Below are positions 49,745 to 51,764 of a DNA stretch of 64,000 bases, piece after piece. The notes beneath the pieces are model-generated. The model did not search any database and had not been told where the DNA came from. It worked only from the letters and a program-made list of their open reading frames with translations. Every line of letters begins with the position of its first letter. Positions within the stretch are counted from its first letter, which is position 1. The translations under genes and the position numbers were made by a program. The stretch lies in the sequence record OU509535.1; one strand, given 5' to 3'.

Positions 49745-49794
49745 GGATGATTATAAATCTGAATTGACAGAAACAGCTAAAACTGTTATTATCC
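49745..49794 (+). ncRNA. 50-nt tRNA-like repeat, copy 1
   Basis: 7-bp closing stem plus two hairpins; covaries with copies 2 and 3. Confidence 0.7.
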
Positions 49795-49802
49795 TATTTT
49801 AT

Positions 49803-49990
49803 TCCACAATCAGACGTATATGGTGTAAGTTACGTCGATGAAATCCAGAACAAGATCTCTGGTACTCTAGGAAGTGGTGAATGTTAACCTAGACGGGTTT
49901 GTTAATTGGACGATAAGCAATTAATACTTGACTAGCAGGTTTAAACTAGAGGTGACTGTCCTTCACTATACTGGAAAACCGGATGGATTT
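49803..49990 (+). ncRNA. candidate multi-hairpin RNA
   Basis: gacgta/tacgtc, ctagg/cctag, ttaattg/caattaa, aaatcca/tggattt; no ORF. Confidence 0.4.
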
Positions 49991-50005
49991 TTAATTAAAA
50001 AAGTG

Positions 50006-50034
50006 TTGAACAAAATGTTCAATAATGATATAAT
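50006..50034 (+). promoter_or_regulatory. promoter with TTGAAC-N5-GTTCAA inverted repeat
   Basis: TTGAAC-17-TATAAT. Confidence 0.8.
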
Positions 50035-50125
50035 AATTATCAATGTAAGGCGTGGAACAATGTTTACAGAAGTTACTTAGTAGCCTGTACGCCCCACGTC
50101 AAGGTAGCCGAAAGGCAAGTTTAAT

Positions 50126-50175
50126 GGGTGGTTATAAATCTGAATTGACAGAGACTATTAAAACAGTCACCATCC
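50126..50175 (+). ncRNA. 50-nt tRNA-like repeat, copy 2
   Basis: gggtggt/accatcc closing stem; same layout as copy 1. Confidence 0.7.
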
Positions 50176-50363
50176 AAATTTTAATTTAATAGTTTAGTAT
50201 GAATAAAAAACAAATACATAAACATTATGATGAAATTGCAGTGAAGGTTTTTCGTGGTGAATTAGGTTATAAACCATCTGTTAAATCTAAATATTCAAAA
50301 TCTTCTTCAATAAAGTTCAATCATAAAATAGAGTTTAAATAATACTGGACAAGAATACATAAA

Positions 50364-50873
50364 ATGAATATCACTAATGTAAAAGATTTTTTAGAATATT
50401 TTATTAAGAATACTCGTGCCCGTGATGAATTAGAAAAAAATGGATTCGTTGATGGTTACGATTGCACTAATTTCTTTTATACTATTGATAAACATGAATA
50501 TTATGTCGATGCAACTTTAAGTGATGATCCATATTATATAAAAGATGGGTATTGCATTGGATTTACGTTCGAAGATAAATCACTAGATGCACCAATAAAC
50601 TTTTATACATTATATTATAATAAAAAAGATAATATTTTGAAATTAGGATTTACTTGGGATGATGAAGAAGATGTTGTATTCAATTGTAATACATGGTTAG
50701 AACATGATTCATTCTTTCAAAGTACATTAATTCATGACTTTATGACAACAGATTTAGAGTACTGGAAAAACTGCATAGAATTACTTAATGTAATTTATAA
50801 TGAACAAGTTAAAAAATTTGACAATAGTTTACACAATGATGACATTTATAATAAAAACTTTATGGGACGATAA
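50364..50873 (+). CDS. FQxS-motif paralog family protein
   Basis: WLEHDSFFQSTLIHDF. Confidence 0.8.
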   Translation: MNITNVKDFLEYFIKNTRARDELEKNGFVDGYDCTNFFYTIDKHEYYVDATLSDDPYYIKDGYCIGFTFEDKSLDAPINFYTLYYNKKDNILKLGFTWDDEEDVVFNCNTWLEHDSFFQSTLIHDFMTTDLEYWKNCIELLNVIYNEQVKKFDNSLHNDDIYNKNFMGR

Positions 50874-50951
50874 TCGTAGGACGGGTCAGCATTTGGTAGT
50901 ATGTTCGGCTGAATAAAGTATAAACGTCATCACCAAATTTAAAAAAAAGTG

Positions 50952-50980
50952 TTGAACAAAATCATCAATACTGATATAAT
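50952..50980 (+). promoter_or_regulatory. sigma70-type promoter
   Basis: TTGAAC-17-TATAAT, TGn. Confidence 0.75.
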
Positions 50981-51007
50981 AAAAGAAATTTTTTAAGGTC
51001 AAATGAT

Positions 51008-51217
51008 ATGTTGACAGATACTAATAAAAAGATGTTTATTCAAATAGGTTTTTTTACTCTTCAAGATATCATTGATAAGGCACATGAAAAATGGCCTAAT
51101 GTAAAACTTGAAGATATTCATATTGAAATAGAATGTATAGAAGAAAATAATACTTCATATCATGGTTTGAAAAACGTAAAAGTTTGCACTGAATATTACG
51201 TATTAAGTATTGAATAA
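51008..51217 (+). CDS. hypothetical protein
   Basis: AAGGT RBS, follows promoter. Confidence 0.65.
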   Translation: MLTDTNKKMFIQIGFFTLQDIIDKAHEKWPNVKLEDIHIEIECIEENNTSYHGLKNVKVCTEYYVLSIE

Positions 51218-51244
51218 TTCAGTACTATATAATTGACTTACTAC

Positions 51245-51318
51245 GTCCCCTTAGTTCAGTTGGATAGAACAACTGCCTTCTAAGCAGTAGGTCACTGGTT
51301 CGAGTCCAGTAGGGGATA
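51245..51318 (+). tRNA. tRNA-Arg(UCU)
   Basis: cloverleaf, actgc-CT-TCT-AA-gcagt; CCA not directly encoded. Confidence 0.93.
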
Positions 51319-51373
51319 TACCATACAATATGGGAATAGTTAGAAGATATTCCCAATTTTAATTTAAAAAGTG

Positions 51374-51402
51374 TTGAACAAAAAGTTCAATAATGATATA
51401 AT
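51374..51402 (+). promoter_or_regulatory. promoter with TTGAAC-N5-GTTCAA inverted repeat
   Basis: TTGAAC-17-TATAAT. Confidence 0.8.
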
Positions 51403-51470
51403 GGTATTATAAAAGGTTGTAATACTTAATATTAACTTTTAAGAAGATAATTAGTATCATACACAAATTT

Positions 51471-51557
51471 AGTGAGTTGGATGAGTGGTTGAAATCACCA
51501 CCCTGCTAAGGTGGCATATGCGAAAGCGTATCGTGGGTTCGAATCCCACACTCACTG
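51471..51557 (+). tRNA. tRNA-Ser(GCU)
   Basis: long variable arm, ccacc-CT-GCT-AA-ggtgg, G73, no encoded CCA. Confidence 0.92.
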
Positions 51558-51578
51558 TAAAATTCAATTAAAAAAGTG

Positions 51579-51607
51579 TTGAACAAAAAGTTCAATGCTG
51601 ATATAAT
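51579..51607 (+). promoter_or_regulatory. promoter with TTGAAC-N5-GTTCAA inverted repeat
   Basis: TTGAAC-17-TATAAT. Confidence 0.8.
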
Positions 51608-51618
51608 AAAAGAATAAC

Positions 51619-51706
51619 GGAAGGATGGCCGAGTGGTTTAAGGCACTGGTCTTGAAAACCAGCAATCCGAAAGGGTTCTAGAGTTCAAATCTCTATCCTT
51701 CCACCA
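51619..51706 (+). tRNA. tRNA-Ser(UGA)
   Basis: long variable arm, ctggt-CT-TGA-AA-accag, A discriminator, CCA. Confidence 0.93.
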
Positions 51707-51714
51707 GATTTTAT

Positions 51715-51764
51715 GGATAGTTATAAAGTTGAATTAACAGCGACACTTAAAATTGTCACTATCC
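51715..51764 (+). ncRNA. 50-nt tRNA-like repeat, copy 3
   Basis: ggatagt/actatcc closing stem; same layout as copies 1 and 2. Confidence 0.7.

Follow-up and report, generated by a model that had tools for sequence, protein, structure and literature searches.

What is the role of a 50-nt sequence that is repeated three times among the tRNA genes of a jumbo phage? The repeats are found in sequence record OU509535.1, in a stretch of 64,000 nt that was analysed as a whole and that we call the window. The window comes from a jumbo phage of Klebsiella pneumoniae (100% identity to the record), with 97–98% identity to RaK2, K64-1 and related Alcyoneusvirus phages; between 49.1 and 52.7 kb it carries a cluster of tRNA and small-RNA genes, with six tRNAs called by ARAGORN. 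A sequence-only reading of this DNA had reported the three repeats, all on the + strand, and had taken them for a D-armless tRNA mimic acting as a decoy. The coordinates of the repeats were borne out by the sequence (Table 1); the mimicry failed in every tRNA test. We think that, with about an even chance, the element is a cassette of promoter/terminator punctuation with a branched RNA fold, similar to the PeSLs (promoter early stem-loops) of T4-type phages.

Fold, strand and distribution of the element

The minimum free energy fold and the centroid fold of all three copies were the same three-way junction, with z-scores from −2.4 to −3.4; the minus strands of the copies gave different and poorer folds. 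Only one of the three junction strands contains any nucleotides. The shared layout described earlier was thus recovered in all three copies, except for the uniformity of hairpin 2: a stem of 5 bp with a 6-nt loop is present in copy 1 only, and copies 2 and 3 have 4 bp and an 8-nt loop. The fold of copy 2 persisted when the upstream RNA was included; the fold of copy 1 taken together with its 110-nt upstream region was not robust (z = −0.75). A covariance model built from the three copies scored them at 75–79 bits, with the next best match in the 64-kb window at 14 bits. The proposal that no known family is involved was upheld: the copies had no match in Rfam 15, either at gathering thresholds or at E ≤ 10.

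The same three copies are present in RaK2 and Muenster. By BLAST searches and pattern scans, Asteriusvirus phages that infect E. coli and Salmonella (121Q, PBECO4, SD-6, E9.1, TH47 and others) were seen to carry one copy, and phage EJP2 has a distinct copy between tRNA-Ser and tRNA-Arg. The element was also found in Klebsiella podophages of Zobellviridae/Citrovirus, Asterion and Klyazma. In a wider search, patterns were scanned against viral, genome and metagenome contigs; loose patterns returned chance matches, which were filtered by pairing. Among the matches listed, pairing in those to the core pattern was bimodal, with 14–15 of 15 pairs in true copies versus 4–12 in chance matches, and the scans added the metagenomic contigs L347 (three copies) and L342 (one copy) as well as L137, a podophage contig from IMG/VR. 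A match in contig L649 was within a coding region and was rejected as a chance one. The complete scan of IMG/VR with a specific pattern returned only RaK2 (3 copies), 121Q (1) and L137 (1), along with one chance match, and no copy was found in 5,426 E. coli genomes or in the PLSDB plasmids. Whole-contig pattern scans gave three copies per genome in RaK2-type phages and one in 121Q. Gene content beside the copies differs between the window, L347, 121Q and EJP2. The family appears to be narrow and phage-borne, yet to cross unrelated lineages that share enterobacterial hosts.

From the phage of the window and its relatives we collected 14 distinct variants of the element, to which all counts of variants and of alignment cells given below refer. 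The compensatory changes in the stems noted from the three copies proved to be real, and they became more numerous with more sequences. Standard pairs occupied 96.4% of cells versus 85.1% in shuffled alignments, and none of 500 shuffles reached the observed value; sliding of the partner dropped pairing to 30–60%. Six pairs changed on both sides, with pair 31–40 being present as GC, AU, CG and UA, i.e. in all four Watson–Crick types. There were 22 G·U cells, closing stems included, versus 2 A·C cells. As the complementary strand would carry many mismatches, the selected fold is that of the + (sense) strand RNA, and the + strand is the transcribed orientation in the context of every copy. By this comparison, the pairing is under selection at the RNA level on this strand.

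Promoter layout and predicted terminator side

A feature overlooked in the sequence-only reading is that the unpaired bases that are conserved, together with the pairs that never vary, fall into the layout of a sigma-70 promoter. Element positions 20–25, made of loop 1 and two stem bases, correspond to the −35 box; hairpin 2 fills the spacer; positions 43–48, in the 3′ strand of the closing stem, correspond to the −10 box. Hairpin 1 overlaps the −35 box in this arrangement and the closing stem overlaps the −10 box. A consensus promoter scan picked up the site of copy 1 (Table 1). Each of the 14 variants contains TTGACA or TTAACA, separated from the −10 box by exactly 17 nt; the bases A−11, A−8, T−7 and G−14 never change, and TTATAAA..TGAA lies upstream in every case. 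Copy 1, the first L347 copy and the three podophage copies have TATTAT or TATCAT as their −10 box, EJP2 has TACTAT, and the remaining variants have CACTAT, CACCAT or AACCAT; matches to the consensus number 5/6 in five variants, 4/6 in one and 3/6 in eight. A 6/6 −35 box combined with a −10 box of at least 5/6 occurs in only 0.27% of random 50-mers drawn from the window.

Constraints of the promoter and of the fold would jointly explain the conservation pattern. Of the seven pairs that always keep standard pairing and never change on both sides, six contain a promoter-critical base: T16–A25 and G17–C24 (end of the −35 box), C30–G41 (−14) and, in the closing stem, T7–A44 (−11), T4–A47 (−8) and R3–T48 (−7; A and G both pair with U). 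Freely covarying pairs fall in the spacer or at weakly constrained positions.

Promoter-like sites with at least 11 of 12 matches were seen in the window 18 times on the + strand versus twice on the − strand (e.g. at 26854, 44173, 54098 and 58098), and several such sites come with a hairpin, placed within the spacer, across the −35 box or immediately before the site. The phage of the window, as it appears, does use promoters of sigma-70 type. Its early cassette, AAGTGTTGAACAAAA..TTCAATAATGATATAAT, is 34 nt long, occurs four times in the tRNA region and has an inverted repeat over the −35 box; this promoter organisation looks PeSL-like.

A second overlooked feature is the U-rich tract which copies 2 and 3 share with an ordinary terminator hairpin. 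Copies 2 and 3 are each followed by the tract AAAUUUUAAUUU (also written AAATTTTAATTTAA), which is also found after a plain 7-bp hairpin past tRNA-Arg, ∼360 nt upstream of copy 3. This comparator hairpin holds after tRNA-Arg the position that the element holds after tRNA-Ser. A similar tract follows a predicted terminator at 48786. The Asteriusvirus copies are followed by A and 7–9 U, copy 1 is followed by UAUUUUAUU, and no U tract is adjacent to the podophage and EJP2 copies. The consensus terminator scanner cannot score branched stems.

Across copies, promoter score and fold stability are inversely related. At a promoter score of 10–11 the fold has −8 to −10 kcal/mol, with no adjacent U tract; at a score of 8–9 it has −11 to −18.6 kcal/mol, with the U tract present. 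The promoter-rich group (copy 1, the Citrovirus podophages and EJP2) combines TATTAT, TATCAT or TACTAT with a weak fold; the terminator-rich group (copies 2 and 3, the Asteriusvirus copies and L342) combines CACCAT or CACTAT with a strong fold and an A(1–3)U(4–9)AAUU tract. The extra G–C pairs of the podophage copies lie outside the −10 box, not inside it. Copy 3 has the weakest boxes; as a 12/12 promoter follows 22 nt later, this copy needs no promoter of its own.

The context of the copies was compared as well. Each of them had been said to follow a tRNA or a structured RNA. This holds for copy 3, placed right after tRNA-Ser(UGA) (Table 1), and for copy 2, which follows a conserved RNA of ∼85 nt ending in a GNRA hairpin; copy 1 lies only at a distance, 110 nt past tRNA-Gly. 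The third L347 copy, like copy 3, starts 8 nt past an encoded CCA. Downstream, an ATG is found at 24–28 nt from copy 2, the Asteriusvirus copies, L342 and the podophage copies, and instead of an ATG copy 1, copy 3 and the EJP2 copy have RNA genes or a promoter. Genes downstream of the copies are unrelated: ORFans with different PHROGs or none, an HNH gene in L347 and a tRNA in EJP2. In Klyazma, a phage with no RNA polymerase gene (PMC9960094), the promoter of the element (11/12) ends 30 nt before the first open reading frame (ORF) of the early region, which has a Shine–Dalgarno sequence; two other strong promoter-like sites, both without the fold, are located upstream, in the terminal repeat. 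Copy 1 is directly upstream of a conserved RNA of ∼190 nt, at a place where 121Q has a canonical early promoter, and probably replaces that promoter. Promoter-rich copies, then, seem to sit where a promoter is needed. No published transcript maps were found for phages of RaK2, 121Q or Klyazma type.

One could picture the work of such a cassette as follows. At the DNA level the element would be a promoter for the host sigma-70 polymerase, with positions 20–25 as the −35 box, hairpin 2 as the 17-nt spacer, positions 43–48 as the −10 box and TTATAAA..TGAA as an A/T-rich upstream region. In transcripts that run into the element from upstream, this sequence would fold as RNA: the two inner hairpins would draw together the strands of the 7-bp closing stem, and hairpin 2 would stack on this stem to give a continuous 12-nt 3′ strand. 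With the U-rich tract, the structure could terminate or attenuate transcription, and it could cap the 3′-end of the tRNA or small-RNA transcript that precedes it. Individual copies would be tuned in one of two ways, being either promoter-rich or terminator-rich.

The closest known systems are the PeSLs, sigma-70 promoters with an AT-rich upstream region and with stem–loops, including G–T pairs, between or overlapping the −35 and −10 boxes; lacZ fusions demonstrated that they work both as promoters and as terminators, and they were suggested to take part in modular shuffling (PMC2839356; PMC4122927). The element resembles PeSLs in its near-consensus sigma-70 promoter with an AT-rich upstream region and in the stem–loops, with G·U pairs, that overlap the boxes. 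PeSLs often end in a Shine–Dalgarno sequence and an ATG, and they occur in many copies in hyperplastic regions, with ORFans and mobile genes, where they flank indels between related phages; the element agrees with this in part, having an ATG after some copies and RNA genes or a promoter after others, and few copies, beside which gene content differs between phages. It differs in being a closed three-way junction, whose closing stem pairs the upstream region with the −10 box, in its far higher conservation (28 of 50 columns are invariant) and presence in only 1–3 copies per genome, and in its link to genes for tRNAs and small RNAs and its occurrence in an unrelated family of podophages as well. 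Whether it represents a new branched, three-helix form of PeSL logic is, by this analogy, an evenly balanced call. Near-identical elements in jumbo myoviruses and in Klebsiella podoviruses of Zobellviridae document an exchange between unrelated virulent phages of what would be a regulatory cassette.

Rho-independent terminators that close tRNA operons of bacteria and phages are also similar, given the start of copy 3 and of the L347 copy 8 nt past the CCA, the U-rich tract and the position shared with the plain hairpin. Unlike such terminators, the element has a branched stem: the strands of the closing stem are 36 nt apart, and the sequence that they enclose is conserved. Its U tract comes after 1–3 A residues, and some copies have no U tract.

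Several observations weigh against the promoter/terminator reading. Promoter and terminator (or attenuator) functions belong to published PeSLs, whereas in the element both are predicted, and a three-way junction is not a described PeSL architecture. Eight of the 14 variants have a poor −10 box (3/6, no T−12), yet their −35 box and TATAAA are unchanged, a hint that the unpaired bases may matter in the RNA; the complete invariance of TATAAA (100%) goes beyond what a UP-like region would need. The designation of the invariant pairs as promoter-critical was partly post hoc, and pairs G1–C50 and G2–C49 are invariant without a promoter reason; terminators, for their part, need G–C pairs at the base of the stem beside the U tract. 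The U tract of the Klebsiella phage begins after AAA, which is unusual for a terminator of E. coli type. Finally, the consensus promoter past copy 3 makes an internal promoter redundant there.

If the element is nevertheless such a composite, then fixed loops and covarying stems are not in themselves a proof of a trans-acting RNA, since signals in the DNA can account for the fixed bases, and a terminator in the RNA for the stems. Such a cassette would be a very compact and portable insulator-plus-promoter, read in two ways by the host RNA polymerase, with a bearing on annotation of tRNA and small-RNA regions in phages and on the building of genetic parts.

Table 1. Coordinates of the three copies and of adjacent features in the window (ORF, open reading frame)
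Feature	Coordinates	Strand	Details
Copy 1, promoter-rich type	49745–49794	+	GGATGAT / UAUAAA / hairpin 1 / hairpin 2 (5 bp) / ATTATCC; 75.7 bits; −9.7 kcal/mol
Sigma-70-like promoter in copy 1	49764–49792	+	TTGACA, 17 nt, TGT-TATTAT; 11/12 matches, with TG extension
Copy 2, terminator-rich type	50126–50175	+	79.2 bits; −12.9 kcal/mol
Boxes of copy 2	50145–50150 (−35); 50168–50173 (−10)	+	TTGACA; degenerate CACCAT
Tract after copy 2	50176–50190	+	AAATTTTAATTTAAT; then ATG of a small ORF at 50199
GNRA hairpin upstream of copy 2	50103–50119	+	GGTAGCCGAAAGGCAAG; same hairpin before the EJP2 element
Copy 3, terminator-rich type	51715–51764	+	76.9 bits; starts 8 nt past the CCA of tRNA-Ser(UGA)
Boxes of copy 3	51734–51739 (−35); 51757–51762 (−10)	+	TTAACA; CACTAT
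Tract after copy 3	51765–51779	+	AAATTTTAATTTAAA; then 12/12 consensus promoter at 51786–51814
Comparator: ordinary hairpin and tract after tRNA-Arg	51332–51368	+	GGGAATA-9 nt-TATTCCC (51332–51354), then AATTTTAATTTAAA
Canonical early promoter cassette	50001–50034	+	AAGTGTTGAACAAAATGTTCAATAATGATATAAT; hairpin over the −35 box; recurs at 50947, 51369 and 51574

Alternative explanations

The main rival is a structured RNA module that acts on its own and that a host factor recognises, with the promoter resemblance being incidental or secondary; we regard it as a serious rival, though on the unlikely side. In a more specific form, which we put forward still more tentatively, the three-way junction is the RNA motif itself, spread horizontally among unrelated virulent phages of Enterobacteriaceae and binding a host factor via UAUAAA and AAUURA, with the promoter overlap as a secondary economy. 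A processing or protection element was also among the options of the sequence-only reading. The module could be an endonucleolytic processing signal (of RNase P or RNase E type) that fixes where the tRNA or small RNA before it ends, or a protective cap at a 3′- or 5′-end; in other words, a motif that binds a host factor might direct endonucleolytic 3′-end formation or might protect stable phage RNAs. Covariation of the + strand pairing is what one would expect of this module, and so is the conservation, also where the −10 box is degenerate, of the linker UAUAAA (100% invariant) and of loop 1 (AAUURA). The element is common to jumbo myoviruses and to podoviruses of Zobellviridae, unrelated phages that share only enterobacterial hosts, and all copies are in the transcribed orientation beside tRNAs or conserved small RNAs. 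The ∼190-nt RNA is bounded directly by tRNAs in Bragavirus phages, which suggests that processing of tRNA type sets the ends of small RNAs in such clusters. Also, loop 1 (UURA) is able to pair with loop 2 (UUAA).

These arguments have their counterparts. The loop–loop pairing is possible in 87.5% of cells but lacks covariation, with no pair changed on both sides. The 17-nt spacing, the near-consensus promoters, the trade-off between promoter and stability and the fixed distance to start codons are left unexplained by an RNA module. As for processing, the 7-bp stem and abutting 4–5-bp hairpin of the jumbo-phage copies have what would be the geometry of a minimal RNase P substrate, and their position directly 3′ of an RNA that needs a 3′-end might recall tRNA-like substrates of this enzyme: the precursor of phage P1/P7 C4 RNA, MALAT1 mascRNA and mitochondrial tRNA punctuation. 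This is a comparison of geometries. The element differs from these substrates in having no T-loop and no CCA and in matching neither the tRNA model nor the C4 model; moreover, the 12-bp measuring geometry is not conserved, the closing stem of the podophage copies being 10 bp long. If the RNA-only explanation is true, the element would be a new family of small structured RNAs linked to stable-RNA loci of phages.

It is improbable, in our estimate, that the element is purely a promoter at the DNA level, with inverted repeats forming DNA hairpins (cruciforms, single-stranded hairpins or recombination sites) and with no role as RNA. The promoter layout would fit, PeSLs have been proposed as DNA recombination sites too (PMC2839356), and gene content on either side of the copies differs between relatives. 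However, the 22 G·T versus 2 A·C cells mean that the complementary strand would have 22 A·C mismatches, which disfavours a cruciform; the minus strand folds differently, and copies 2 and 3 combine poor −10 boxes with the best-kept stems.

A riboswitch or another gene-specific regulator in the 5′ untranslated region of the downstream gene is more doubtful still: a three-way junction with a conserved junction strand does lie 24–28 nt before start codons in several contexts, but the genes that follow the copies have no relationship to one another (a small RNA, a tRNA, an HNH gene, and others with different PHROGs or none), the two zero-length junction strands leave no obvious ligand pocket, and one copy lies after a tRNA and before a promoter. 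Regulation specific to a gene was rejected given these unrelated genes.

Least probable of all is the initial proposal, that of a D-armless tRNA mimic, either a Y-RNA-like ligand or a decoy to which anticodon nucleases or tRNA-modifying toxins would be drawn; the 7-bp stem starting with GG and the abutting hairpin of the jumbo-phage copies, their location inside a tRNA cluster and the genes of RaK2 for a CCA-adding enzyme, polynucleotide kinase and RNA ligase (PMC3622015) speak for it, and the following results speak against it. In 14 of 14 variants the stem of hairpin 1 is 4 bp long and its loop, AAUURA, has 6 nt, so there is no 7-nt anticodon loop. Hairpin 2 has 3–6 bp and a loop of 4–10 nt in predicted folds (6–8 nt in the consensus structure of the family), and its loop sequences vary (CUAAAA, AUUAAAAC, UUUUAA, CUAACA, CUAAAC) and do not make a T-loop. 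The closing stem is followed by AAAU, UAUU, AUUU, GCUC or GGCA, never by NCCA. ARAGORN (-t, -mt and -mtmam, covering bacterial, mitochondrial or armless, and mammalian-mitochondrial tRNAs; default threshold) called no gene on the element, a lowered threshold gave inconsistent calls only, and the Rfam tRNA model had no match on the copies at E ≤ 10. Because the closing stem, which is of 7 bp in jumbo phages, has 10 bp in Citrovirus podophages (three G–C pairs are added as GCC...GGC), the 7 + 5 stack taken for acceptor and T arms is not a conserved property. Genes for tRNAs are absent from the podophages in which the element occurs (PMC9960094).

Neighbouring RNAs and other observations

The conserved non-coding stretch of ∼190 nt after copy 1 (49801–49994) has 83–93% identity to sequences of T4-like Bragavirus phages of Proteus, Morganella and Shigella, in which the RNA is located flush between tRNA-Gly and tRNA-Asp, resembling the stable RNAs of the T4 tRNA cluster. 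The stretch had no match to an Rfam family; in some records it is labelled ‘hypothetical protein’.

The conserved RNA of ∼85 nt before copy 2 (50040–50125) has a 7-bp stem GGCGUGG/CCACGUC, an inner hairpin and a GNRA hairpin. The 5′ part of this RNA is found again in Kuravirus podophages, within a non-coding region of 650 nt (contig L409, 1201–1259; contig L648, 355–395), and its 3′ GNRA hairpin recurs ahead of the EJP2 copy.

In Citrovirus podophages ∼24 nt before the element (GATTAAATGCTATCATCATTCGCC) are invariant, and a hairpin further upstream differs (contig L408, 1153–1176; contig L125, 1507–1530; contig L137, minus strand, just upstream of 3512). These 24 nt contain an extended −10-like site, TGn-TATCAT, and an ATCATC able to pair with the 5′ strand of the closing stem. 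An RNA started from the TGn-TATCAT site would carry the element at its 5′-end.

A promoter-like site at 59680–59708 (TTGACAGCGACAC...TATTAT) has 10 nt (ACAGCGACAC) in common with the −35 box and spacer of copy 3 (51734–51762), the rest of the element being absent. The resemblance may be due to common ancestry or to chance.

Past copy 3, a tRNA(CAU) gene at 51830–52131 is split in the anticodon loop by a group I intron (∼51866–52091; Rfam Intron_gpI, 89.9 bits). ARAGORN did not call this split gene; at the same position 121Q has an uninterrupted tRNA-Met. The 3′ exon is followed by an ORF for an HNH_3 endonuclease (52149–52574). Ahead of copy 1, the tRNA cluster contains an ORF of 107 aa (49221–49544) with a match to peptidyl-tRNA hydrolase PTH2 (Pfam PF01981, E = 5e-06).

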